From Trichosphaerium sp. ATCC 40318 (taxonomy: Eukaryota; Protista; Tubulinea): DNA of 64,000 bases. How positions within the stretch are numbered: the first letter of the stretch is position 1; each line of letters starts with the position of its first letter. Shown one piece after another: positions 3,703 through 64,000 of this stretch. Both the position numbers and the translations under genes were made by a program. The stretch lies in contig JALMLS010000579.1 of assembly GCA_038496445.1 (NCBI GenBank), positions 1 to 64,000 of the forward strand. The letters are read 5' to 3'. The notes beneath the pieces were generated by a model. The model saw only the letters and a list, made by a program, of their open reading frames with translations. It was not told the origin of the DNA and ran no database searches.

Positions 3703-4585
3703 ATGAGTTTACTGGATATTCCACGTGAACTTCAAACTTACATTTGTACTTTCAACAAAGAAGTATTCACAAAGTTCCACAGTTTATCAAAGAGAGCTGC
3801 AACTAATACACTTTGATGAAGCGTTACAAAAGAAAGGAGTATGGATACAATGGTATAGAAGTGGTAAGGTAAGGCTTCATAAATATTGTATGAGTGGGAT
3901 ATGTAAACAATGGTATGAGAGTGGAAAACTTAAGAGGCAGTATGTATCAGTTGATGGTAAAAAAAATGGCCTTAGTGTAGAATGGTATGAAAATGGACAC
4001 CAAAAGAGTCAATGCATGTGGGTTGATAATAAACAGCACGGTGAAAGTAAGGGATGGTATGATAATGGTCAGCTTGAGGAGCAATGTATGTGGGTTGATG
4101 GTAAACAGCATGGTGAAAGTAAGGGATGGTATAAAAATGGCCAGCTAGAGGAAAAAAGCATGTGGGTTGATGATAAACAGCACGGTGAAAGTAAGGGATG
4201 GTATGATAATGGTCAGCTTGAGGAGCAATGTATGTGGGCTGATGGTAAACAGCACGGTGAAAGTAAGGGATGGTATGAAAATGGACAACTTAAGGACATT
4301 AGCTTTTGGGTTGATGGTACACAACACAGTGACAGTAAAGGATGGTATGAAAATGGGCAACTTCAGTACCACAAGTTACGGGTTTGTGACAAACAACATG
4401 GTGAAAGTAAGATATGGTATAAGAATGGACAACTAAAGTACCAGTGCATGTGGGTTGATGGTAAAAAACATGGTGAAAATAAGGGATGGTACGATAATGG
4501 ACAATTAAGGTTTCAATGCACATTTGTTGATGGTAAACAGTATGGTAAATGTAAGGAATGGTATGAAGACGGACAATGTAAGTAA
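3703..4585 (+). CDS. F-box-like N-terminus plus MORN-variant (MORN_2/YwqK-like) repeat protein, intronless
   Basis: ATG 3703 gives MSLLDIPRELQTYICTFNKEVFTKFHSLSK. A 2-nt slip near 3810 is corrected by the mirror arm. About ten 23-aa repeats WYxNGQLxxxxxWVDGKQHGExKG follow. Confidence 0.85.
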
Positions 4586-15492: not shown

Positions 15493-16981
15493 ATGGACAT
15501 AGCGCCTGACTTCACAACCGCCCAGGATAACAGGTAAAACAAAGTAATAAATGTATTTTAACTAAAACAATAGCGGTAGTGCTAAAACATTGTTATTGGA
15601 TCTACCAATAGAGATTTTAGCAAGTATTCTCTTGTTTACAACGAAATCACGATTTACAGCTTGTCAAACATGTCATCTCCTTTCTTCTATCATACATGAC
15701 ATCATAGGATACTATAGAGTCAGTATAACAACAAACGAACAAGCACTTGAAGTTATAAAACACAAGGGTATCATTAAACACACAAATATCCGGTTAGTTA
15801 ATGATTTACGAAACGGGTTTCCTTGTGACAGTCTTCTGGAAAAATTTAAAGGAGTTCACACAATTGACCTTCGTAAAACTAAGGTATCACGTGAAGGTGT
15901 TAAATGGCTTGCAGGAGTTCATACAATTAACCTTTATCAAACTTCTATAGATGATAAAGCAGTGAAAGCACTTGCTGGTGTTCATACTATAAACCTTGGT
16001 TGTACAAGTGTATCAGATGATGGTGTGATCGCACTCGCTGGTGTTCATTCTATAAATCTAGGAAGAGTTTCGCGTATTACGGATAAAGCAGTGATTGCAC
16101 TTGCTGGTGTTCATACTATAGACCTTCATGGTATAAACGAAGTGACAGATGAAGGGTTAAAGGCTCTTGCTGGTGTCCATACCATAAAACTTAGAAATTC
16201 TAAAGTTACAGATGAAGGTATTAAGTATCTTGCTGGGGTTCATGAAATCTCACTTTATAGATGTTCGTCAATAACAGATAAGGGTATAAAAGCACTTGCT
16301 GGTGTTCATACTATAGACCTTGGTAATACAAGTGTAACAGATGATGGTGTGATCGCACTCGCTGGTGTTCATACGATTCATTTGAATTGGACTAATGTAA
16401 CAGACAAAGGAGTTGAAGCTCTTGCTGGTGTTCATTCCATTAGTCTTCTACATACTGACGTAACTGACAAAGGTATTGAAGCTCTTGGTGGTGTTCATAC
16501 AATTCATCTCTATGGTTTAAAAGTTACAAATAAGGGCATCAAAGCTCTTGCTGGCGTTCACACCATTCATCTTCATGATTGCCATAATTTAGGTATTGAA
16601 GGAATAAAGGCTCTTAAGGGTGTCCATGAGATTAAATTTAGTAATGGTGGCATTGAAAGAACGACAAGAAAGGATGAAATTCTTGAGTACCTTTGTGATG
16701 TACACACAGTAGGCATTGAAAGTAACCAGGAATCATTTACAGATGATGGAATCAAAGCGTTAACTAATGTCAAACATCTTCATCTTGTTTATAGTGGTTT
16801 TACAAACTCAGGTTTGAAGACATTAGTTAACTTGGAACAACTTGTGTTAAATGACTGTTACAAGATTACTGGTGATTGCTTCAAGCATTTGAAATCTCTG
16901 AAAAGTATTACTGTACTGGACTGTGAAAAAATTTCAGAAGAGGCTGTCAAGTCAATGGGTATTAGATATACCTATGAGTAG
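15493..16981 (+). CDS. F-box plus leucine-rich repeat protein ('GVHTI' LRR), one short 5' intron
   Basis: ATG 15493 with intron 15534-15573 (GTAAAA...TAG) splices in frame to LLDLPIEILASILLF (F-box). About 15 repeats of 21-22 aa follow (LAGVHTIxLxxxxVTDxGIKA). Confidence 0.9.
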
Positions 16982-18950: not shown

Positions 18951-19832
18951 TATTAGAGGTTATAATTAGTTTATTCGATAATATCAATTTAACGAGTGTT
19001 TTATCTACCAGAGAGGGTAATATATCAAATAAACGTCATTCGAGCGTTTGGTTTAATTTTTTTGCTGTTTAAATGGAATTTTCGTTTTAATTGTGTTCCA
19101 AGTGTACCTACTAGTTCCATTTGCATTTAATTCGTATAATTACGTGCTTTTTCAGCGTGTAGACTTAATCAATCTGCAAAGTTTAAGTCTTGGGTACCTC
19201 AGAAATTTGCCTAGCGTTTGTGGATCGAGATTATCGTGTACGCCATCGGACGCCAAAAAAAGTTCTTTTCTGCCACAGGTGCACATATAAGCGCTAGGTT
19301 CCGAAGATCCGGTTCTCCATCTTTAATATACGGCCCTTGTTGATTTCATTTTTTTGGTTGCACATATTTTATTCTGGCTAGGAGCTTAGCAACACATTGC
19401 TTACACCTCTAGATAACTTTGAAGAAACCGTTCGCTCAACAAAGATTTCGGACAATCACATATGCTGAATGGGCGAAGTCGTGTTAACTGCCAATTTGGT
19501 TGACAACATTTTCTAAAGTTTAAGAAATTGTGACAGCAAGGTTTTACAATTTTATTGCCTTGACCTAAATAAATCCGACACAATACAACATAGTATGTTC
19601 TTATTGTAGTATGGCTTACTCAAATTAGCAACACGGGTTATGATAAAACCGTTTAGCTAAAAACGTTGAGTCAAACTGTTACGTGAATGGTTCCTTTCGT
19701 ATTGGATACAAATATCACGTGTTTAACAGTAAAAGGTACTAATTAACCCTTACAACTATTAGAGTGTTCTCACAGCAAACAAACATAGGAACTCACATTA
19801 AAAGTCACCAAACAGACCGTCAATCCTCAAAC

Positions 19833-20981
19833 ATGAGCCTCTTAACAGCGTCCGGAGACTTGTTTAATTATATCGTTAGCATTACCGTAAAGGAAGCAAT
19901 TGCGTTCTACGAGAGTTTCCAAACACCACAGGAACCCCTACGCACGCGTGAGGATACCAGAAGAGCTTCTAAACAAGATAAACAACGAGATGAGTTAATT
20001 GAAGATTGGGTAGATTTAATACCTAAAACAGAAGACGCTTCGCAGATCACGTGTATTAAAGATATTCCTGTGGAAATCATGACGAGAATTCTACAATCTC
20101 TTTCGGCTAAAAGTAGATTGGATGCTTCTCTCACGTGTTGGCACTTCGCTCTTGTCATACACCACTACATTGGCTTTGGTAAGACTACCTTGGGAGAAGA
20201 AAAACAGTACAAACAATACGTCAAAACAAAGGAGAACAGCAAAGTCTTACCGCTCCCTTCTCAATGCGTGACGTCGAAGCTTTTGTATGACTTGTCTAAT
20301 GTTCATACTGTCAAAGTACCTTATTCTAAGGTAACTGATTCAGGGATAAAAGCTCTAGCACGTGTGCCTGTTGTAGATTTGTCGTTTTGTTTTCATATTT
20401 CTGATGAAGGTGTTTCATCTCTTTACGGCGTTGACGACTTAAATCTAGCAGGTTGCACTCAGCTATCTGATGACGCTATTATTGATCTTGGAGGTATACA
20501 TACAATCAATCTCGCTGGATGTATAAACATTACAGATAAGGGGTTTAAAGCGCTTGCTGGTGTTTATGATATCAACCTTCAAAATACAAATATTTCAGAT
20601 GAAGGCATTAAAGCTCTTTGTACAGCTCAGGTGATTGATCTAGCCAACTGCGAGTTTATAACCGATGATGGTGTATCATCCCTGTGTGATGTAGGATCGA
20701 TTAATCTAAGTCATTGCACGCAGATTACGGATGTTGGCGCTAGCGCACTTCAAAGTGCTGAACATATCAACTTATTAGGATGCCAACAAATCACAGATAA
20801 AACGATTAACTCACTCGTTTGTGTATCAATCTTGTGTGTTGGAGATTGTCCTAATATAACAAGAGAAGGACTGAAAATCTTAGGGAATGGTGTACACATT
20901 TCTTTTGATGAAATCAGTTTAGCAGGATGGAAAGACTATGTAGAACTTGTTGAATACCAATATTTTTGGCAATGGTTTTAA
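19833..20981 (+). CDS. F-box plus LRR protein, intronless
   Basis: IKDIPVEIMTRILQSLSAKSRLDASLTCWHF (F-box), then LxxVxxINLxGCxxITDxG repeats. First ATG at 19833. Confidence 0.88.
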   Translation: MSLLTASGDLFNYIVSITVKEAIAFYESFQTPQEPLRTREDTRRASKQDKQRDELIEDWVDLIPKTEDASQITCIKDIPVEIMTRILQSLSAKSRLDASLTCWHFALVIHHYIGFGKTTLGEEKQYKQYVKTKENSKVLPLPSQCVTSKLLYDLSNVHTVKVPYSKVTDSGIKALARVPVVDLSFCFHISDEGVSSLYGVDDLNLAGCTQLSDDAIIDLGGIHTINLAGCINITDKGFKALAGVYDINLQNTNISDEGIKALCTAQVIDLANCEFITDDGVSSLCDVGSINLSHCTQITDVGASALQSAEHINLLGCQQITDKTINSLVCVSILCVGDCPNITREGLKILGNGVHISFDEISLAGWKDYVELVEYQYFWQWF

Positions 20982-21552
20982 GAAACGACTTTGTGGTTTT
21001 CTAAGTCGCTAAAACAACACGCGTATAAAATTTGTGAATAAAATTAAAAGGTGTTATGTACCCAATTCCCAAATTGTTTTTGAGACATGTAAAAGCAAAG
21101 AGAAAACTGACTGGTAACAGAAGGTCAAGAACAAAACAAGTCAAACACGATTGTTTATACGTCTCGGTTTAATGTTCTACTAGGGTATATGGCACTCGTG
21201 CAAGGCAATGATGGTTTAACCAAGACAACCATATGCTATTAAGGAGCGCAGAGATCATGGATGCCGTAAACTTAAAGTGAAGGAATATTTCTTTTGAATC
21301 GCGATCTGTAAGATATTAATCAAGCTTTAGATCCGCTGACAATTGGAGTCATTGTGAGTGGGTGTACCGATTGAGGGGTTAATAGTATTATTCTATTATA
21401 GTCACGTGATAGGGCAATAGCTTTGGTTCTTAAAATTGTTTTGTTCAAAGGTTGCTGGGATAGAATATTTCACCAGAATTTAACTAAGACCAACTTTGAC
21501 GTTCGATGCTAAGGCAACGTTACAATCAAAGTCGCCAATATACTCTAACGCA

Positions 21553-22857
21553 ATGGCTAGTGTGCAATGCGATGACATACGCTCTTGTTTCGTTGAAACA
21601 ATACCAACAGAGCTCATTGTTGCTATTTTTGAGTATACTCTGGACATAGAGCGATATCCGCTTGCTCACACGTGCTGGCTGTTCTATAATATTATTCACA
21701 GCCACATTGGTTACGGTGAAATCGTTATAAGGTCTTCAGAGTCATTACAGCTTTTACTCAGCCAGAAATCGCTTTTAAACAACACTCTTATATCATTCCA
21801 AGAGTACGAGGCCACAGACGAGGAAATAAGCTCATTGGCAGGTGTTAAATATTTATCAATTTGGCAACTGCAATTGACCAATAAGTGCCTAGAGGCACTT
21901 GCTGGTATTAAGGAAATAGATATATACGGGTGTAAAAAGATTACAGATGAAGGTATTCAATTCTTGTCGGGTGTACATACAATAGATGTGAGCTATATGA
22001 GACAGTTGACTGATAAGTCATTAGAAGCTATTTCGGGCGCTTACAAAGTAGAAATTTCTGGTTGTAATCGTATCACTGATGATGGATTAAAATCACTTGC
22101 TGGAGTTCATTATATAGATTTACAAGGTTGTAAAGTTACTGATGTTGGTGTGAAATCACTTGCTGGAGCTCACACAATAATATTGTCTGGTTGTCAAAGT
22201 ATTGATGGATCTTGTTTTGAACACTTGGCGAAAGCTAAAAATAGAAAAGGCAAAATATGTCTGCACATGATTGATATTGGTTGTTGTGAGGGTGTTAATT
22301 TCGATCATGTGAAACAATTATCTGGTGTACATGAAATTAGTTTACGATCCTTGTCCATCAAAGATGAAGATATAATACCTCTTGTTGGTGTAAACGTACT
22401 TGACTTGAATAATTGTAACAACGTAACTGTAGATTCAATAGCATCTTTTTCTGGTATTCACAGCATCGATTTAAAAATGTTATTCATACAAGACTCATGG
22501 CTTGAATATTTATCAGGAGTACACACGATAGTCTTAAGCAATTGCAAAGGTTTTACTGATAATGGATTGAGATCACTTGCAGGAGTTCATACTATTTACT
22601 TATCTTGTTGCAGTGATGTCACAGATGAAGGTGTCATTCACCTAGCTGGTGCACATACAATATGGTTGCGTGGATGTTCTAAGATAACAGATAGAGGTGT
22701 TAAAGCTCTTGCAGGTGTTCAAGCAATAAGTCTGAAAAGCTGTTCTCTTGTAACAGATGAAGGGATATCCGCTCTTAAAGGTGCTTTTAGAATAATTATA
22801 GAGGGTACAAAGTGTACAAAAGATGCTGTCATTGCTTTGGGTGCACAATTTTATTGA
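21553..22857 (+). CDS. F-box plus LRR protein, intronless
   Basis: VETIPTELIVAIFEYTLDIERYPLAHTCWLF (F-box), then about 14 LAGVHTIxLxGCxxITDxG repeats. Confidence 0.9.
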   Translation: MASVQCDDIRSCFVETIPTELIVAIFEYTLDIERYPLAHTCWLFYNIIHSHIGYGEIVIRSSESLQLLLSQKSLLNNTLISFQEYEATDEEISSLAGVKYLSIWQLQLTNKCLEALAGIKEIDIYGCKKITDEGIQFLSGVHTIDVSYMRQLTDKSLEAISGAYKVEISGCNRITDDGLKSLAGVHYIDLQGCKVTDVGVKSLAGAHTIILSGCQSIDGSCFEHLAKAKNRKGKICLHMIDIGCCEGVNFDHVKQLSGVHEISLRSLSIKDEDIIPLVGVNVLDLNNCNNVTVDSIASFSGIHSIDLKMLFIQDSWLEYLSGVHTIVLSNCKGFTDNGLRSLAGVHTIYLSCCSDVTDEGVIHLAGAHTIWLRGCSKITDRGVKALAGVQAISLKSCSLVTDEGISALKGAFRIIIEGTKCTKDAVIALGAQFY

Positions 22858-33256: not shown

Positions 33257-34599
33257 ATGTCATACAATGAACTCATCTCTTGGCTTTGGCTGGGCTCTTC
33301 AAAAAGTACAGACGTGTTGCTAGTTCAAATATTGGTACGCTCAATTACTACAACGCTGTATTAACGAGTTTTAGCTTGGTATCTTCATGTTTTTTATCAA
33401 CTCATGTGTTTTCTTCAAAGCTCTGTCTCCAACGATATTTAACGCTTGTATTATTACCTCATCTGTAGCCGCATGTATTATCATCGTCATAGCGTACTCA
33501 ATTCAACACTGAAATAGCACTTACATTATATAATTTAGTTGGGTAAAAGTTGATGGAGAAATCTTTGTTAACTTTGGTTTTGGATTTTTCATTGGGATTG
33601 TTTTTATGAGCATTGGAGCGTCTATTGGCGCTACAAACTACTCTATGGTTAGCATCACATACCCCTTTGTTCTTGTGGGTACCCACGTGATAAATATTTA
33701 TTTATTTTTAGATGCAATCAACAGACTTTTCGGCGTCAGTTACAAAGGTATGCGAGAAAACAGAACTGTGCTTTGTTTTATTCTAACCTTTTCTTTGTTT
33801 TTTTCTTAGCCTCAAAATACAGATAAATACTTGTTCGCATTTGACGATGAACCTCTTGTTGCGTTTAATTACACTGGATATATCAAGGGCGGCTTATATG
33901 GTTACTGTGTTGCACCTATTACATCAAATTATTCAGTGAGTTCTATTTGTATTACTACTTTACAACTCTAAATCCATGTGATATTTTATTCAGATACAAG
34001 ATGTATATGTCTATGCACTTTGCAAGCTTAAACGCATTAATTACCCTTTGTATGAAACATGCCCAAGCTCAGATCCATGCATATCAAGATGGAAAGAACC
34101 AATTGGTTTTGGTGAGTAATACTGGTTTTTTTATTCACTTTTGTAATTTTTTGCTCTGATAGGTGTGAGAGTGCACCATGACGCCACCAGCGAACATTAT
34201 GCTAATAATGCTGCCAACAACGTATCAAAAACCTTTGATATTATTAACAACTATCCTCTGTTGTTTGTAGAATGGGACAGTCCTTCGAACCAGATGAAAC
34301 ATTGGCAAAAAGTATTATTACTTTGGACAATTTTGCCAAACGCTTTATGGTACCACTAAGCTAAACTCAATGCCAAGTCAACTTATGTCTTATCAGGATT
34401 TTACTGACAACGTACACGTGCTATTTTAAATGTACTAAAGACTACTACTATTAATGTAAATATTGGTGAATTGCGTATTCCTAATGCCATGCAGGAGGTT
34501 GCCGAACGAAGAACAATCTATTTATTTGGTTTTTTTTTCTTCATCAAAAAGAAACGATTTGTTGCATTCGCTCCATTCCAATATGATAAGGATATGTGA
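33257..34599 (+). CDS. Uncharacterised multi-exon gene
   Basis: Series of short plus-strand exons bounded by GT..AG (ORF pieces at 33606, 33947, 34165). No recognisable domain, and the frame is not fully resolved. Confidence 0.35.
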
Positions 34600-35642
34600 A
34601 ATACGTTAGTTAAGTATCTATAAAAAGCATATAAAGTGTTTTGTAGCTTTTTCAAAGGGAAAATAATGATATTGAAAGATCTCATGATAATGTTGCTGAA
34701 ATTGTCTCTTTTTGGTTGGATGTTGAAACATTCTCTTTGAAGCAACCTACCATGACCGGAAGGTGTCTCAACTGCGGTTATCTCTCCAATAGATTCTCTA
34801 TTCATAGAACACTGATTATCTCCGCCACTTTGTTTGCCATCAATGTAAAGACACTGTGATTGAAGTTGACCATTGTTGTAAAACTGAATGAATTTTCCGT
34901 CTTTTTTATTGTCAACCCAAAAGCTGTGTTCTTTTAATTGGCCATTATCATACCACCCTTTATATTCGCCATTCTTTTTATCATTTACCCAGATACATTG
35001 TTCTTTAAGCTGTCCGTTTTCATACCATTCTTTACCTTGACCATTAAGTTTATCATCAACCAATATAGAAAATGATTGAAGTTGACCATTTTCATACCAT
35101 TCTCTGTTATGAAACTTTTGCTGTCCATGGCCATTATCAACTATCTTCCTATGTACCTGAAGTTGTCCGTCTTCATACCATATTTTAATTTCACCATTTT
35201 GTTCATCATTGACCCACATACATTGTTCCTCAAGTTGTCCACTCTGATACCACATTTTAGTTTCACCATTTTGTTTATCATCAATCCACATGCTATGTTC
35301 TTGAAGTTGACCATCCTCATACCACGCTTTATATTCACCGTTTTGTTTGCCATTAGCCCACATGCACTTCTCCCTAATTTGTCCATCCTCATACCACCCT
35401 TTATATTCACCATCTTGTTTACCATCAACCCACATACATTGTTCTTCAAGCTGCCCGTTTTCATACCATTTCTTGTACTCACCGTTGTGTTTACCATTGA
35501 CTATTGTACATTGGACACGAAGTTGTCCATTACTATACCATGTTTTATGTTGATCATTACGTTTACCTTTCACTATCATGCACTGTATTTTTCTCTTTGT
35601 CGCGCAGTAATTTTGCTCCACAGTTTTTTTTTCTGGCTGCAA
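34518..35642 (-). CDS. MORN-variant repeat protein
   Basis: About ten 23-aa WYENGQLxxxxxWVxxKxNGExK repeats (35560-34830). The 5' end resembles a splice acceptor (TTTTTTGCAG), and the non-repeat tail may not be real. Confidence 0.82.
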   Translation of the reverse strand: MQPEKKTVEQNYCATKRKIQCMIVKGKRNDQHKTWYSNGQLRVQCTIVNGKHNGEYKKWYENGQLEEQCMWVDGKQDGEYKGWYEDGQIREKCMWANGKQNGEYKAWYEDGQLQEHSMWIDDKQNGETKMWYQSGQLEEQCMWVNDEQNGEIKIWYEDGQLQVHRKIVDNGHGQQKFHNREWYENGQLQSFSILVDDKLNGQGKEWYENGQLKEQCIWVNDKKNGEYKGWYDNGQLKEHSFWVDNKKDGKFIQFYNNGQLQSQCLYIDGKQSGGDNQCSMNRESIGEITAVETPSGHGRLLQRECFNIQPKRDNFSNIIMRSFNIIIFPLKKLQNTLYAFYRYLTNVFHISLSYWNGANATNRFFLMKKKKPNK

Positions 35643-36570: not shown

Positions 36571-37545
36571 ATGGCAACAAATGAACGTGAAACGATAAAC
36601 AACGTCCATTGTTGGTTTCAAAATGTTCCACCGGAGACCTTAACGCATATTCTTCGCTGTTTAAACAGACCACAACGTATTAAAGCTTCCACAGTCTCTC
36701 ATGCGTTTAATAACATTGTTCGCTGTAATATTGGCTTCGATTACATCCGTTTGCGCAATTCATCCGATTGTCGTGTTCTAAAAGGCAGCCCTTTGCTCAA
36801 AAACACTGAGATAGCATGTCGTAGTTTAACAATGTCAGATACTGAGTTGAGTTACCTTTCTGGCGTTCGTTCTATTGACCTACAGCATGCCAGTATCACA
36901 TCAACTATGAATAAAGGTGATTGGATGAAAGCCTTAAGTGGTGTTCATTCAATAAATCTTGGTCATATTCAACTCCCTGAAAAAGATCTTGATGCATTGG
37001 TTGGCGTTCACACTATAAATCTAAAATTTACTAATGTATCTGATCATGGTATACTCTCATTAGTACATGGAGGAAAGCACACTGTACACACTATAAATTT
37101 GCATTGGGCAAAGATAACAAATGTTTCTTTGGTTGCACTTACAGGTGTACACACTATTAATATCCGTGGTTGCTTCAATATTACTGAAGAAGGAATAAAG
37201 GCACTCAAAGATGCACATGAAATTAGAATCAGTCGTCCTAAACAATCATGGCTTAAACATCTTGGTAATGTACACACTCTTCATATTTTTAGCGGAGAAT
37301 GTCTGACAGATGGGCTCAACTCATTGGTTAATGTCAAATGTTTGCTGTTGAGTAGGTGTGGGAGTATAACAGACTCAGGGTTCAAACGTTTGATCAATCT
37401 TGAACACTTGGTACTTAATTACTGTCATGCAATCACAAATGATGCCTTACAATACATGAAAGCTCTTAAAAGTATCAGAATAAATGGGACTTGTAAGATA
37501 ACTAAAGCATTTGTAGATACAACTAGTATACATTGGGAACAATAA
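36571..37545 (+). CDS. F-box plus LRR protein, intronless
   Basis: FQNVPPETLTHILRCLNRPQRIKASTVSHAF (F-box) and LxGVHTINL repeats. The C-terminal cap LINLEHLVLNYC resembles that of the 15493 gene. Confidence 0.88.
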   Translation: MATNERETINNVHCWFQNVPPETLTHILRCLNRPQRIKASTVSHAFNNIVRCNIGFDYIRLRNSSDCRVLKGSPLLKNTEIACRSLTMSDTELSYLSGVRSIDLQHASITSTMNKGDWMKALSGVHSINLGHIQLPEKDLDALVGVHTINLKFTNVSDHGILSLVHGGKHTVHTINLHWAKITNVSLVALTGVHTINIRGCFNITEEGIKALKDAHEIRISRPKQSWLKHLGNVHTLHIFSGECLTDGLNSLVNVKCLLLSRCGSITDSGFKRLINLEHLVLNYCHAITNDALQYMKALKSIRINGTCKITKAFVDTTSIHWEQ

Positions 37546-45806: not shown

Positions 45807-48448
45807 ATGGAAGCCGACAAAAAGTACCTCACAGAGGGTGAGGCTAGTGAGGCTAGTCATAATGATCTTAAACTGCAGTGTGAGGTTAGAGGGCTTTCAA
45901 AAACCGGTTCAAAGCCTGCGTTGGTAGCTCGACTTGTTGGTTCGTACTTTTTAATTCCTTGTGAACTTTTAGAACGATTTTTGCGTTTGTACGTTATTTT
46001 TTAACTTATCTTATTAGAGCATGATACTGCCCATAGTGATATAGAAGATTTAGCAATGCTACGCAATATCGTACCAACGGGTAACTTAGTCCTCGCCTAC
46101 AACACCATTAGCAAGCAGCTGGATCAATTCAATAATGATATGAAAGAGATAAAAGAAGACGGAGCGAAGAACCAAAAGATGATTGAGCATCTTCGCAAAG
46201 GGCATGAGAAAACTCAACAAGAGCTTGGGGAAACTCGACAAGAGCTTGGAGAAACTCAACAAGAGCTTGAAGAAACTCGACAAGAGCAACAAGATATTGG
46301 ACAAAAGCTTGAGGAAACTCAACAAGGATTGCATAGTATGAGTTCTCTGATACTTATTATGCAGCTTATCATGTTGGCATCTCAGTATAGAGATAGCAAA
46401 CTAACTATGCTTGTTGAAAAGGGTACGTTGTATTTCTAGTTATCCGTCATTGATTGATTGAATTCCTAATTTATTTTCCAGACTATGGTGTTCTTGGTCG
46501 CCACATAAGAGAGTATGTTGCAACCTGTGTTGCGTACTTTTTTGATGAAAGAGAAGCGAATGATGTTACTGACGAGGAACTGATACCCAACATCAAGTAC
46601 ATGAAGGCAACAGGAGATACTAAAAGTAAACCAGAAGCCGCTTTTACCAAGCAACTGGTTGGAATATTTTCTGACGGAAAAGGTAAACGACCTTCTGTAT
46701 TTCCATTCTTGGCGCCTATCAACACGCATGAGAAGTGTGTTCGGCAAAGTGGCCCAGATGTAAGGAAGTTTAAGCCAGATATTTCGTTCGTTGCTATAGA
46801 TGCTCAATTTGCAGAACTGCATACGTTACACATTGTAGTACCTATGGAGCTTAAAGGTACGCTAATTGTTTTTGCTTTTTTTTTGCTTGACACGTGATGA
46901 CATTTTAAATAATTTGCTTTACTTACAATTTTAAAGTTACTGCTTTGGATAGCGCCGCAGAAGGACAATTATGGAACTATATGCACCAGGTACAGTCCAA
47001 TTTTTGTTTTGGAACACGTTTTCTTTTTCAGTTCTTTACTGATTGTTTTCCAGATTATGCTTCGCCAGAAACTACGAACTAAGTGCTATGGCGTTCTAAT
47101 GAATAAAAAATATGTAATGTTTCTTAAAATGGAGATGCCTGACGGTGACCAGAAGCCACCAACGTACGTTTTTTGTTTACGTGTTAAAATCTTCGTTCTC
47201 AGCCTTTTATCTCGTTCTAGCTATTCCTTCACAAAAAAATATCCTCTATATGATGTTTGTAAATACAAATTAGCTCACAGAGACGAATTCGAGGCTAATT
47301 ACGCTCTTGACAAACCATTTTACGGTCAAAAGTTGCTACGACACTTTTTGTCACAATCACCAAAGACTCTCGGTTGGGAAATACCACACTTTGAAATAAA
47401 AGGGAAGCGCTACACCCCACATACCGTCCTTGGTATGGGAGCCTCAAGGTACAATTTCATCTCACTTGGAGTGACCCCTATCTAAATACGTGTTAGCATT
47501 GTGTATGGTATTAGCCGTATTGTAAAAGTGCCACCAAAAAGGCCAAATACTCGGGCAGCAGCAAGAAAGGCAAAAGAGTCAAGTGAACAACCAAAGCCAG
47601 TAAAAGAGCTCATTGCAGTAAAGTGCCTTCTTGAAGATACACCAAAGTTTCGTGCTATGTTGTTGCATGAGCGTGAGGTTCTCAAAGAGCTTAAAAAGTG
47701 TGCCTATACTCCCAATCAGGTACTATCAAAATGTTCCTTTTTTTTTTCTAACTTTGTTTAGATTTACACACCATCTGACATGTACTTCTTCATGAGTCCT
47801 GTGGGATTTCCTCTCAAATGCAGCCAATACACTTCAAACATAGAGTGGCTCAAACAGATTATAGATGGCCTAAAATTCGCACATGACCGTGGGATTGTTC
47901 ATAGGTATGTTTTTCCTTATTTTTTTTTTTACAACAAACTTACTCGCTGCAGGGACATATGCCCAGGTAATTTATTAGTTACGGCTGACTCTAATAAAGC
48001 TGTAATAATAGACTGGGGCGTAAGCACAAAAATTGACGAACTTGCAGTTGTAGAAGGGACGCTTTTGTATGCTCCACTCAATTTAGTCAAGAATTATGAT
48101 CCCGATCAAAAATACACAGTCGGACGTAATTACGACTTGCTATGCCTTGTTCAAGTAGTTATGTTCCATTCAAAGTTTACCAAAGAAGAACAAGACCATT
48201 TGATAAAATTGTACAAAGGTTGGGTAAACTTACGTACTGGAAACCCATCGAACCTTGAATGGAAGACCGAATATCAAATTCGTCAACAAATGGTTAAGCA
48301 ATGGCCACAACCTAATTGCTTGTGGCGTAACATATTTGATGCAGCTTATCAAACTAACTATGACGGACTGAAAAAAGCTTTTGCAGCAGTGATGATGCGC
48401 AAACGAAATGTAAAGTATGGCCTAAAACTATCAACATTCGGTAAATAA
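45807..48448 (+). CDS. Crinkler-type protein: SAP domain, coiled coil, PD-(D/E)XK nuclease fold, protein kinase; multi-exon
   Basis: SAP: DLKLQCEVRGLSKTGSKPALVARL. Heptad repeats follow. Nuclease fold: KPDISFV..VVPMELK..AEGQLWNY..Q..R..YGVL. Kinase: LGMGAS, AVK, E, HRDICPGN, DWG, GTLLYAP. Confidence 0.82.
46209..46326 (+). repeat. 21-nt coding tandem repeat (coiled-coil heptads)
   Basis: Units like GAAACTCAACAAGAGCTTGGA encode KTQQELG ETRQELG ETQQELE ETRQEQQ DIGQKLE ETQQ. Confidence 0.85.
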
Positions 48449-58417: not shown

Positions 58418-59401
58418 TTACAATTCATTTGATGCACCTTCAGCAAAATGAACATTCTGTTTGACTTGTCCATTTTCATACCACTCTTTGCAGTGGCCCT
58501 TTCTTGTACCGTTAACATACATAGCTTGTATCTGTGGTTGTCCATTCCAATACCACTTTTTGAACTCACCATTTTCTGTACCATTAACATACATAGCTTG
58601 TAACTTTAGTTGCCCATTATCATACCACTGTTTGAAATCACCATTTTCTATGCCATTAACAAACAAACCTAAAGTTTTGGATTGTCCATTCTCATGCCAC
58701 TCTTTGTACTTACCATGCAACTTACCGTCAACATACATACTTTGCAACTCTAGCTGTCCATTTTCGTACCATTGCTTAGTCTCTCCATTCCGTTCACCTT
58801 CAATGTACATTCTTTTAACATGAGGTTGACCATTCTCGTGCCACTGTCTGAACTCATTGTTTTCTTTGCCTTCAACATACATAACTTGTATTGCTAGTTG
58901 TCCATTCTCATGCCACTGTTTGAACTCACCATTTTTTATGCCATTAAAAAACATAGCTTGTAGCATTAATTGACCATTCGCATACCATGCCTTGCACTCT
59001 CCGTTTTCTTTGCCGTCAATAAATATAGCTTGCAATGCTAGTTGTCCATTCTCATGCCACTCTTTAGCTTCACCATGTTGTTTATCATCAATATACACAG
59101 TTTTGAGCCTGAGTTGCCTGTTTTGATGCCACGCTTTCTTGTTTCCATTCGCCTTACCGTCACGCATCATAACCTGGAGTTTTACAGAGCCATTATCGTA
59201 CCATCTCTTCCAGATTCCTTTTTTTTCAAGTTTGGTATTGAAATGTGTGTTGACAGCAGCAGTTTTAGAGAGTGAATGGAAATTGGTAAACGTTTCTTGG
59301 TTGAATGTACACAAATAGCGTTGTATATCATTTGGTATATGTAGTAGAGTATAAGACGTAACATTAGGGCAATTTTGACCGAGATTTGGTCTTTTTTCCA
59401 T
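58418..59401 (-). CDS. F-box-like N-terminus plus MORN-variant repeat protein, intronless
   Basis: LLHIPNDIQRYLCTFNQETFTNFHSLSK, then about 11 WxENGQLxxQxMYxxGxENGExK repeats. Paralogous to 3703-4585. Confidence 0.9.
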   Translation of the reverse strand: MEKRPNLGQNCPNVTSYTLLHIPNDIQRYLCTFNQETFTNFHSLSKTAAVNTHFNTKLEKKGIWKRWYDNGSVKLQVMMRDGKANGNKKAWHQNRQLRLKTVYIDDKQHGEAKEWHENGQLALQAIFIDGKENGECKAWYANGQLMLQAMFFNGIKNGEFKQWHENGQLAIQVMYVEGKENNEFRQWHENGQPHVKRMYIEGERNGETKQWYENGQLELQSMYVDGKLHGKYKEWHENGQSKTLGLFVNGIENGDFKQWYDNGQLKLQAMYVNGTENGEFKKWYWNGQPQIQAMYVNGTRKGHCKEWYENGQVKQNVHFAEGASNEL

Positions 59402-59785
59402 TTTGTGGATATAGAGCTTACTAAAGAAATGATCTGTTGCTTATCGCTACTGTCAGTGAGTTCTTTATCAAACTGTAAACTAGTTTGCCTTTCAAGTAAA
59501 GTCAAAAGGGGTGAAATAACACTATGTTATTGTAACGTTAAGCATACTCTTAAAGGCCACTCTCGATTTGTAGCACGCACGTGACTTTCTACTCTTGTGC
59601 CTACGTAAAGTACTTCCTAACGATACACTACTAATATAGCTTGCAGAGTTGCATGAGGGCTACCTATGTTCATATGAAACCGTCTCGAAAAATCAGTTAT
59701 CTAACACAAACTAACTGTTTCACGTCAAATACTTTCTTCGAATACCACGAAACGTGCAACACTAACACCTCTTGTTGCAACAATA

Positions 59786-60725
59786 ATGGCCCGTACTAAG
59801 CAAATAGCTCGTAGATCAACTGATTCAGCCTCAGGTAATGAAAAACCAAAGCGGCTCTTTGAGAAAAAGCGAACCTTTGCTTGTGTCGATGCTAGCGCTA
59901 TTTCTATGTGTCCAACCGAAATATGGATAGAAATAATGTCAAACCTGCTTTGTAAAAGCCTCAGGACCTTATGTTTCGTTAATAAGACGGTTTACGCTAT
60001 TGTATACGCAAACAAGGCATTGTCAAAGAAAATCAAACAAGGTACACCAAAAGGAAAACCCATTCTTGGAACTTAAGTTAACATAACAACAGGAATTTTG
60101 AACTGGGAACACGTTGTGCTCGATGTAGTCAATTACAATGGTCCACCTAATCCAGGCATACCTTTTATTGAACCATTGTCAATATCTGGAAGACTGATTA
60201 AGGACCACAACAAAGACTTGTCAACGCATAAGGCAAATTCGTGTCAGAAATACCTGAGAACGATAGAACATTCAAAAAAAGAATACAGTTGTAGATGTTC
60301 CACCAGACAAACATGACGGTATTATCCGTTGGGAACCTTTATGGCCTACAGGTGATAATGACATGTTTATGGGTTCTTTGCAGCAGTCCGTTTGGGAGTC
60401 AAACAGTGGTAACATCCTGTATCTTTCAATATCAAAATCAGGATGTGATGGTGCTATTGGATTGGATACAAAAGACGACTGTGTTGTAGTTGGAACAGGA
60501 AATAGTCACCCATACATACGTTCTTGTGACTTTAGTTACAGAAGTTCTAATGGTAGTGACCCTCATTTTTGGTCACGAGCAACTAGAAATTCTGACCCTG
60601 TGTTTAAAACAATTGCTATGTATCCTGTTCTAGATGCCATTGTTGTACTTGAAGAACTTAAGCTCAACTTCCAACGCTCATCAAAAAAATGGCTATCACT
60701 AGCTGATGTTGAATTAGGAAAATAA
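59786..60725 (+). CDS. F-box protein with histone H3-tail-like N-terminus
   Basis: MARTKQIARRST, then SMCPTEIWIEIMSNLLCKSLRTLCFVNKTVY (F-box). A GTACAC..CAG intron (~60042-60092) splices in frame. One frame change near 60234-60280 is either a GC-AG intron or an A-run error. Stop at 60725. Confidence 0.8.
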
Positions 60726-60960: not shown

Positions 60961-63864
60961 TTACATGGCACCTCCTTTTAAAGCCTTTGCTTGTGATTCA
61001 TCATCAGAATGAGATGTCGGGTTAGGCTCGTTGATTTTTTTTTTTAGATTTTCATTCTCAGCAGCGAGTATATCTACAGTTGCTTGAAGTGTTCCAAGCT
61101 GACCTTTAGTGTTTTCTAGTTCTGAAGCTAATAAATCTTTTTCTGTTCTCAATTGTTGTACGAGTTGTTCTAACCGTAGGACAAGGTTCTTTTGCCGTTC
61201 ATCCTTAAAAAAAAATTCTCGTTAGTTCTTTTTGTGATTATGCATAATTTTATTGACTTTGTTATTTTTCTGGTTCAAGCAAAAATCGTACTGGACTCTT
61301 ATCCCAACCAACAGAGATACTCCGCTTATCATATTGGCCAGAGCTTCTCTTTCTTGGTACTCGCTCACTTACAGCACGACGTAATGGAGCACCACGAGGC
61401 TTTTCAGGTGTCTTTGGTGCAGTTTTGTTGTTTACGTGTGGTGGCAATTCTACAAAATTACAATTAACGCTAAAACCATCTAACATGATACATACCCGCT
61501 GTTATAGCTATATTGTGATGAGAACCGCCAGATATTTCCAAAGGCACTTTTTTTCGTAGTTGCACTACTTGTTCTGGCTCGTAAGCAGTACCAGACTAAG
61601 AAATTGATGAGTTTTGGGCTTTTAAAATGAATTTGTCGTTCAATCTAATGTTAAGCAACGTACTTGTAGATTAATATGATGTCCTGTACCGTATGTACGA
61701 TAATCATCGGTTACAAAGAAAGAATTATCAGTTGTGCAAAAAATTTTGATAAAAGTGCAACCCTTAACGCTTTCTGCTCTACAAAAAAAACTTAATTAAG
61801 TTATTCTCTGATTGGTGGAACATACCTTATGATTTGTGGTGTATTTACATGAAAAATATGCTCTTTAGAGTCCTTTGAGACTATTTTACGCCAAAATAGG
61901 CCAAGACCAAGAGTACCTACGATAGTTTGATAAGTAAACACTCACAAACCAACTAAAACGTTACCCATCACTGCGTTACCCCATGACAAAACGCGTCCAC
62001 TTTCTAATTAAGTAAGTTAGTACGAAATTACTGTACACTACTAGTAGGGTCTACAGATAACAACACGTACTTGTGAGGGCGAGAGAAAATTTAGATTTTG
62101 CACAAATCTGTGTTATCGCTGTTTTAAGTAATGCAATCTTTGTAGGAGTATAAGCATGCTTCCAGTGCCCAAGCCCTAGTTGTCCACAATCATTATTACC
62201 CCACGCGTAGACGCTGCCAGATTCTACAAAAAAAACATTAGTTTTCCTTCGCGTATACCAAGCCATTGAGCTTGAAAGTATGAAGCCTCGCGCTAAAAAA
62301 TTTGTGTACAAAAGTGATCACTTACTCGCTAATACCAAAGTGTGTCCACTGCCACAAACAATCTTATTAGCCTCAACGTCAGCGATTGGAATGAGTGTAG
62401 GCTTCAACATAAATGTTACAGCACTACCCAAACCAAGGAAACCACCAGTTGAGCTGCCCCACATGTATACTTTATTATCGTCTAATCTCTCAATGAGTAA
62501 CATCACCGCAGAGCCAGTATGGTGATTTTTCAAACAAGAAACCAAACAACGTACTTGAAATGGCACCAATACGTGTATCAGAAGATTCTTTATCAAAACC
62601 AAGTGAGATACTGACTAGTTTTGTGTTGTTTGAAGGCAGAGAAAATCTCAACGTCTCCAAAGAATACCCAGATGATTTTAAAGAAGAGAAAGAACGTTGA
62701 TTACCCCATAAATGTACTTCTCCATCTAATAACAAGTGAGCTGACTGATTTTAAACAATTTTGTTACACGTGTTTAGATATAAAACGCTGTGTCGTACCG
62801 GCTATCGCTATAGTATTTTGGTCACTTGCATCAATAGCAGTGTATTTAATTTTACAAAATTCTTCTGGAAATTTGCTAACAGTGTACACTTTCTTGTCAT
62901 GTGGACGGCCTAGTTTACCACTACGAGCATCTCCCCAACCATATATATCACCGCTAGCTATAACACCACGTGAGTACTATAAAAAGCGCCAAACAAGAGA
63001 CAATATGACACCATCACTAAAAAATGGCAAAAAAACACGACACCTCCTTGGGGAACAAAAAATACAAAAACAGAAAAAGTTAATGACAGTTCGTTCGTAC
63101 CTGTCAAAGCAACAGAATGTTCATTTGAACATCTTACAGATGTGAAACAAAGCGATAAATCAGTGTCTAGTTGGAAAAAAGATCCATTAATGTCCTTACA
63201 GTGTAGTTTATGCTTCTATCGATGAACAAGTAAGCAAGGCGTCACAAAATGATAAAAATAAAAAAACAAATCTCCAGTCGCGTCGTCTACGCCACTAAGA
63301 AGTTTCCTTCATTTTAAGGAATACAATTCATGTGTTTATGTACCTCTTGGCCAATACCCAACTGAGAATGAATATCCCATCCCCAGACATTTAGACTACT
63401 CCAAAGATCTCCTTTTTAGCATATTAGAATCACTTCTTTGGCATTTTTGATTTATGGTACCTCCAGAGCGATAACGCACGTCAAAGTCTGTAAAACACGA
63501 TACACATACCTATCAATGGTTTAGGGTAATTCGCAATTACTGTTTAGACCAAAATAGTGTATTTAGTCTGGAGGCATCACAATGCCGTGTAAATAGATGC
63601 TGGCGTACTCTGATCGGTGTATTGGTAATGTAGGACATAACAAGCTGGTAATTTGAGCAACGTTTACAGTATATATGGCCACAGTGCCTGCAATGGTGCT
63701 ATGACGTATCAGTACATTGTTGTACGCTCTCTATTTACCTTGCGTTTGAAAAGCCCAAATTCATCGTGACAGTGATAACAATTCTTCTGAGTACTATCTG
63801 GCATCCAATGGGAAGAATGGGTGGCAGGTGCACTATTTGCGATAGTTTTTGCAGGGCTTGTCAT
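60961..63864 (-). CDS. FYVE zinc finger, RCC1 repeats and C-terminal coiled coil; multi-exon
   Basis: WMPD..CYHC..FGLFKRK-HHCRHCG..CKRCS..R-VCVSC (FYVE). YGWGDARSGKLG, VYMWGSSTGGFLGLG and VYAWGNNDCGQLGLG (RCC1). Heptad tail. Confidence 0.88.
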
Positions 63865-64000
63865 TTTCGAGCATACGTTACTTTGTATAACGCTTGTAGG
63901 GTGCAACTGAGACTTGGATACGTTGTTTTAATTCTCACGTAGAAAACTCACTTTTTTTCGTGTGTCGTGACACTGTTTGCAACTATCACAAGAAAAAGTG

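Follow-up and report, generated by a model that had tools for sequence, protein, structure and literature searches.

A histone H3-like N-terminus on a probable F-box protein of Trichosphaerium, and the small family to which it belongs

The locus and its reading frames

The window analyzed here is a 64,000-nt stretch of contig JALMLS010000579.1 from Trichosphaerium sp. ATCC 40318. Between positions 59786 and 60725 of its + strand lies a gene whose N-terminus resembles the tail of histone H3, flanked by a divergent MORN_2-repeat gene, 384 bp away, and by a convergent FYVE/RCC1 gene. An earlier note on this DNA had treated 59786-60725 as one gene, made of three pieces that lie in two frames. Homology reaches the stop at 60725, and the frame is interrupted twice, by a 51-nt intron and by a +1 break at or beside a run of seven A.

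58418-59401, - strand: MORN_2-repeat gene, intact, 327 aa (Pfam, E 6e-41)
59786..59821, + strand: H3(1-11)-like N-terminus, codons 1-12, MARTKQIARRST (PDB matches to H3 residues 1-15)
59786..60041, + strand: exon 1 (85 codons + 1 base), with the H3-like start, a basic cluster and the F-box match (first in-frame ATG; tblastn)
59903..60031, + strand: F-box match, aa 40-82 (Pfam PF00646, E 0.0017; PF12937, E 0.014; both below cut-off)
60042..60092, + strand: intron of 51 nt, GTACAC...AACAG, with an in-frame TAA at 60074-60076 (alignment with P0001, the closest relative)
60093..60275, + strand: first part of exon 2, in the frame of exon 1, linker to KYLRTIEHS (tblastn with P0001 to 60283; family alignment)
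60274..60280, + strand: A7 run, the site of the +1 frame change or adjoining it (frames; P0001 and family alignment)
60276..60725, + strand: second part of exon 2, in the shifted frame, orphan C-terminal domain, stop at 60723-60725 (42% identity to P0001, E 2e-36)
60384..60572, + strand: most conserved core, W.S..LYL....G.I.LD.K...V....HP....DF.Y..S.GS.P (19 invariant columns, four members)
about 60961-63906, - strand: FYVE/RCC1/coiled-coil gene with several introns, convergent with the H3-like gene

The first ORF of the gene (59786..60076, + strand) opens with MARTKQIARRST and runs for 96 codons up to a TAA. Aligned with H3 in register, it shares 10 of 12 residues if the initiator Met is counted, or 9 of 11 after the Met, where ARTKQIARRST faces the ARTKQTARKST of the processed H3 N-terminus; residues A1 R2 T3 K4 Q5 I6 A7 R8 R9 S10 T11 are thus those of H3 with T6I and K9R. 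The earlier note had described this likeness, and had placed it at the true N-terminus of the protein, as we find it. No other ATG stands in frame between the in-frame stop at 59702 and the ATG at 59786, which has an A at -3 and a G at +4; the use of the latter is supported by the lack of any other in-frame ATG before aa 41 and by homology with P0001 from aa 19 onward. The probability of at least 9 matches to H3 in 11 residues, given the amino-acid frequencies of the window, is 2.6e-10, which rules out a chance likeness. When a 25-aa N-terminal query was compared with all PDB sequences, the listed matches were histone H3 entries (among them H3 variants, a Cse4-named chain and H3 fusion constructs) and three designed helical-repeat proteins; query residues 1-15 aligned with the start of H3 (1-15, or 4-18 in tagged constructs) at E-values of 0.1-2, as high as these because the match is so short. 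No other ARTKQ-type string occurs in any frame of the window.

The likeness to H3 ends at residue 12, beyond which none was found in any frame of the gene. No piece of the gene matched the Pfam Histone model (PF00125) at E<=1, in line with the earlier claim that no histone fold follows, and the 85-aa exon 1, used as a query against PDB sequences, retrieved no H3 chain. The lack of a Histone match and of H3 likeness after residue 12 in the other frames rules out that exon 1 is a decayed histone fold. The H3-like start is followed by an NLS-like basic cluster, KPKRLFEKKR, at aa 20-29.

The two interruptions of the frame differ in kind. In a tblastn search with P0001, the alignment covers 59840-60040, leaves a gap of exactly 17 codons and resumes at 60093; because it begins at 59840, the sequence upstream of Met41 can be taken as coding. 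The 51-nt intron is the only model that keeps KIKQ-G-ILNWEH, the counterpart of KIRRGVIDWNR in P0001, which itself has no intron at this position. Further downstream, the alignment with P0001 stays in the first frame until about 60283 (KYLRTIEHSKK); from about 60276 or 60339 onward, up to 60725, it lies in the next frame. As assembled, the first frame ends at a TGA (60314-60316), and the product would be truncated at about 160 aa. An intron is ruled out as the cause of this second change: all GT-AG pairs were enumerated, and those that fix the frame either span 19 nt or less or delete residues conserved with the relatives (KYL..., LWP...). Reading the sequence between 60260 and 60340 brought no GC donor site to light either. 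Because no credible intron is left, we prefer a one-base frame break. The shifted frame is open for 152 codons, for which the chance of meeting no stop is 2e-5. An assembly error of one base and a very young pseudogene or truncated allele are about equally probable explanations, with a slight leaning toward a real break.

As to the surroundings, the MORN_2 gene lies back-to-back with the H3-like gene, as had been noted before, and it was then thought to encode an F-box as well; it gave no Pfam F-box match at E<=1. By eye, its N-terminus (LLHIPNDIQRYL...) looks F-box-like. A third F-box gene, reported earlier in the immediate vicinity, was not found by Pfam in 56.9-58.1 kb. In the FYVE/RCC1 gene on the other side, a FYVE finger (63.7-63.9 kb) and several RCC1 repeats (about 61.5-63.4 kb) are followed by a C-terminal coiled coil. 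By eye, the introns of this gene appear to measure roughly 45-100 nt, to start with GTA and often to contain TACTAAC-like branch sites; the 51-nt intron of the H3-like gene appears similar in size. Elsewhere the window holds at least four F-box/LRR_6 ORFs (15590-16981, 19764-20981, 21496-22857 and 36571-37545, + strand), two more MORN_2 ORFs (3725-4585, + strand; 34518-35642, - strand) and protein-kinase fragments at 530-1003 and 47780-48448. The density of F-box/LRR and MORN_2 ORFs marks the window as a region of expanding adaptor/receptor-type families.

The family, its F-box and its orphan domain

Relatives were sought in protein collections and among metagenome and viral contigs. A full HMMER scan of 1.84 billion representative proteins with the C-terminal piece returned P0001, P0002 and P0004 as real relatives, besides a repeat protein that proved spurious; P0005 came from a profile search of 5.8 billion proteins and L006 from a scan of JGI metagenome contigs with the core alignment. 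All five are environmental eukaryotic sequences. The scan of viral contigs found no relative, and on that ground we do not favor a giant-virus origin. Together with the window gene they form a family of six sequences, the overall identity to the window gene ranging from 23% to 36% (36% for P0001, 28% for P0004). P0001, which lies on an 8.6-kb genomic contig, matches the window with an E-value of 2e-36 in tblastn and 3e-19 in phmmer. The contigs L001 and L006 are mRNA-like, 1 kb long and end in an A-run, L001 with an AATAAA signal; L003 and L004 measure 940 nt and 1 kb, respectively. On the contig of P0001, a stretch of about 60 nt just before the ATG (L002:2860-2935) reads GTAAGT...CAG and may be a 5'-UTR intron.

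All five relatives share the C-terminal core, and the four with a known N-terminal part also match F-box models. In the window gene, PF00646 aligns with aa 40-73 and scores 18.6 bits, below the curated cut-off of 20.5; L006, with 20.6 bits, reaches it. A match is thus found where the F-box had been announced earlier (about aa 40-75), sub-cut-off in the window copy and at the homologous position in the four relatives. A family profile compared with PDB had beta-TrCP F-box chains as its top matches, at an E-value (0.35) that is not significant. Taken with its relatives, the window gene probably encodes an F-box protein, and the alignments define a small, so far undescribed eukaryotic family that, as read from sequence, combines an F-box with an orphan C-terminal domain.

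The fifth relative, P0002, has a different context. Its contig (L004:1-420) opens with the 3' end of what appears, by eye, to be an eIF1/SUI1-like gene. Between this end and the C-domain ORF downstream lie only some 300 nt, not enough to accommodate both an N-terminal tail and an F-box; possible explanations are that P0002 consists of the C-domain alone or that its contig is chimeric.

The C-terminal domain had been called unrecognized, and our searches agree: it had no match in Pfam, and a family profile found none for it among PDB sequences. The alignment of four members has 19 invariant columns in a core of 63, with I or L in front of YL, and the window gene keeps all 19. Where the five relatives share a Trp (K..W..V.Y), the window gene has a Thr, and NSDGSGP has changed to SSNGSDP in it. 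AlphaFold2 gave a pLDDT of 43 for P0001 with a 7-row alignment and of 55 for the C-terminal domain alone, where a helix and a five-strand core are moderately confident. Foldseek comparisons of these poor models of the C-terminal domain with PDB and AFDB clusters gave no TM above 0.4, and ESM Atlas feature matches were weak (0.57 to SPRY and F5/8-C, 0.74 to fungal F-box proteins). We describe the domain as an orphan of roughly 190 aa, predicted to be alpha/beta and without known relatives.

Conservation of the N-terminal motif and what it may reflect

The N-termini of the relatives read as follows.

P0004: MPRTKQAPRIQN, MPRTKQAPR; in-frame TAG upstream
L006: MGRLKQHQNRRK, MGRLKQ; stop upstream, poly(A) end
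P0005 / L003: MKTTIQN as called
P0001: MEPQSSPKTEKV, MEPQSS; in-frame TGA just upstream

The contig of P0004 is mRNA-like, with an AATAAA shortly before its A-ending 3' end. L003 is mRNA-like as well, and the N-terminus called on it is doubtful: within its first 260 nt (L003:1-260), the first ATG opens MARTKFIPKSPEKK (MARTKF) in a frame other than that of the F-box ORF, and an intermediate frame reads RKRKRTISSSSSS (RKRKRT), like the NLS region KRKRTSTSQ of P0004. Because two A9 runs separate these three frames, L003 is likely one ORF that was broken twice and that starts with MARTKF. Breaks at A-runs recur in the family, at A7 in the window gene and at the two A9 of L003, and may stem from technical error, from slippage during transcription or from genuine decay.

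Four relatives have a readable 5' region, and M-x-R-[T/L]-K is found in three of them if L003 is read in this way, which takes two frame corrections. The earlier note had named orthologs lacking the motif as evidence against its proposal: the closest relative, P0001, starts with MEPQSS, and its contig contains no ARTK in any frame; the three others keep M-x-R-[T/L]-K. Since it is present in both subfamilies, this motif is probably ancestral; P0001 would have lost it, and L006 would have a relaxed form. Between the window gene and P0004, residues 1-6 are 5/6 identical, against 4/29 for residues 7-40, 14/45 for the F-box, 7/41 for the linker and 43/137 for the C-domain. In this comparison residues 1-6 stand out as a conservation island, the pattern that a functional short linear motif would give. 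The retention of the first five or six of these residues in distant relatives makes it probable that the H3-like motif is functional.

Its boundaries are narrower than the likeness of the window gene to H3. A1 is replaced by P or G and T3 by L among the relatives (MPRTKQ and MGRLKQ in the P0004 subfamily), and the match at residues 7-12 (ARxST) is confined to the window copy, where either the H3 likeness has been kept under selection in this lineage or the segment has been refreshed from an H3 gene. This also bears on the suggestion that K9R makes the protein blind to K9 methylation: R9 is there, but with residues 7-12 matching H3 in this copy alone, the argument does not extend beyond one sequence and is not one on which we would rely. 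A cluster of K and R follows the motif in four members (KPKRLFEKKR, KRKR, RRKR, RKRKR). Being separate and similar to a classical NLS, it suggests that nuclear import would not need residues 1-6.

How much of this applies to the window copy depends on the frame break. If the break is real, the gene may be a young pseudogene from which no full-length protein is made, with an H3-like start left over from an old or recent capture of an H3 5' end or from gene conversion and without function here. We consider this somewhat unlikely. It would fit the +1 break that no intron resolves, the loss of the conserved Trp and the change from NSDGSGP to SSNGSDP, as well as the fact that P0001 manages without the motif; the window is crowded with expanding families of the F-box, LRR and MORN types, among which pseudogenes are common. 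On the other hand, the lesion is a single one and sits in a homopolymer, a classic place of assembly errors. The 152 codons that follow are still open (P 2e-5) and all 19 invariant core residues are present, from which any decay must be very recent. Moreover, the N-terminal island in the relatives would still call for an explanation even if the window copy were dead.

An unlikely alternative is that the N-terminus is merely a basic, disordered region serving nuclear targeting or non-specific contacts, that its likeness to H3 comes from composition or descent, and that no tail reader is involved. The 40 N-terminal residues are indeed rich in K and R and poorly conserved, A1 and T3 vary among relatives, and the H3 tail itself acts as an import signal. 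However, to judge by the sequence statistics, composition alone does not have the power to produce 10/12 identity in register; a distinct classical KR cluster already follows the motif in four members, and conservation drops sharply from residues 1-6 to residues 7-40. Finally, it is highly improbable that the truncated product of about 160 aa is itself functional, with tail, NLS, F-box and linker, its tail being the sole target binder of a minimal SCF adaptor or the whole a decoy that titrates Skp1: the assembled frame does stop at 60316 and leaves tail and F-box intact, but the downstream domain is open and conserved, which is unexpected after a truncation of any age, and none of the relatives has the short form, P0002 being the opposite, a C-domain fragment.

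A possible docking mode and its known counterparts

The reading that we put forward, tentatively, is that a short H3-derived N-terminal motif and an NLS-like cluster are carried by a nuclear SCF adaptor and that the motif docks into a pocket that binds the H3 tail. The locus would encode, or would recently have encoded, an N-terminal pentapeptide x-R-T-K-Q, an NLS-like cluster, an F-box and an orphan domain of about 190 aa. Removal of the initiator Met, which is expected because residue 2 is A, P or G, would expose x-R-T-K-Q; the basic cluster would carry the protein into the nucleus and the F-box would join it to an SCF ubiquitin ligase through Skp1, the orphan C-terminal domain occupying what is usually the substrate-binding end. 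The free H3-like N-terminus would then dock into a pocket made for the unmodified N-terminus of H3. Candidate pockets are found in WD40 propellers of the RBBP4/Nurf55 or WDR5 type, in PHD fingers and in active sites of the LSD1 type; WDR5, PHD fingers and, by a mimicry of the SNAG type, LSD1 are further possible partners beside RBBP4. Docking could tether the ligase to a chromatin complex or present this complex for ubiquitination: the partner may be the substrate, with the motif as a decoy or bait, or the anchor of the ligase, two roles that the sequence does not separate. Several observations count against the docking model, namely the lack of the motif in P0001, the two frame corrections that L003 requires, the small sample of six sequences, the sub-cut-off F-box of the window copy, its frame break and its loss of the conserved Trp, and the variability of T3 and of A1 in the P0004 subfamily. 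Ala1 is required by many H3 readers.

A broader claim would be that SCF adaptors of this genome and of some uncultured soil eukaryotes carry the H3 tail as a free N-terminus and as a histone-derived bait, by which readers, writers or chaperones of the H3 tail are captured for ubiquitination or the ligase is placed on them. We hold this broader claim to be decidedly unlikely.

The docking model has partial counterparts. The histone itself resembles the window gene over residues 1-12 (10/12 in register), with the difference that the latter has no histone fold. F-box proteins are the standard means by which SCF ubiquitin ligases choose their targets, and beta-TrCP, Fbw7, Skp2 and the FBXO family likewise combine an F-box (about 45 aa), placed close to the N-terminus, with a C-terminal domain presumed to bind the substrate. 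Canonical receptors of this kind carry WD40, LRR, Kelch, FBA or SPRY domains, and the C-terminal domain of the window gene is none of these.

Short motifs that mimic histone tails are known from a few animal transcription factors and viral proteins. FOG-1, BCL11A and SALL1 have at their N-terminus an RRKQxxP motif that binds RbAp48 through Arg-3, Arg-4, Lys-5 and Gln-6, and in the bound motif the two residues after these contacts point to solvent (PMC3020727). RRKQxxP (FOG-1, BCL11A/B and SALL1/4, with RbAp48/RBBP4 as the partner) is, like the motif described here, short and basic and placed at the very start of a non-histone protein, for which we assume a nuclear site in our case. It occupies the pocket of a histone-binding WD40 propeller, contacts being made by R, R/K, K and Q with the next two residues free; the family motif, M-x-R-[T/L]-K-Q followed by variable residues, can be likened to it in its sequence. 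Because R, K and Q are fixed here and the following residues are free, a docking of the RRKQxxP kind is proposed. The differences are that our family has RTKQ instead of RRKQ, that a Pro at +3 is missing from the window copy, that the carrier is an F-box protein and not a zinc-finger transcription factor, and that the likeness of the window gene is to H3 itself, over 11 residues.

The SNAG domain, by which Snail, Gfi1 and Insm1 mimic H3 at their N-terminus, is a second counterpart; it has a free P-R-S/T start and binds LSD1. P0004, with MPRTKQ, and L003, with MARTKFIPKS, resemble it in sequence, and the relation does not extend beyond three or four residues; SNAG carriers are animal zinc-finger repressors without a link to ubiquitin ligases, whereas the carrier here is an F-box protein. 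Literature searches brought up no F-box protein whose N-terminus is a histone tail, in agreement with the earlier opinion that the architecture is undescribed. A natural fusion of motif and F-box, held in place at the very N-terminus while the identity between relatives has fallen to about 25-35%, would suggest that imitation of the H3 terminus is a means of targeting chromatin readers or histone chaperones, or of positioning a ligase. The family also has a new orphan domain that is presumed to bind substrates. Histone-tail mimics and F-box adaptors are each known separately; what is new is a probable F-box adaptor with an N-terminal histone-tail-like motif, in a small new family defined by its orphan domain.
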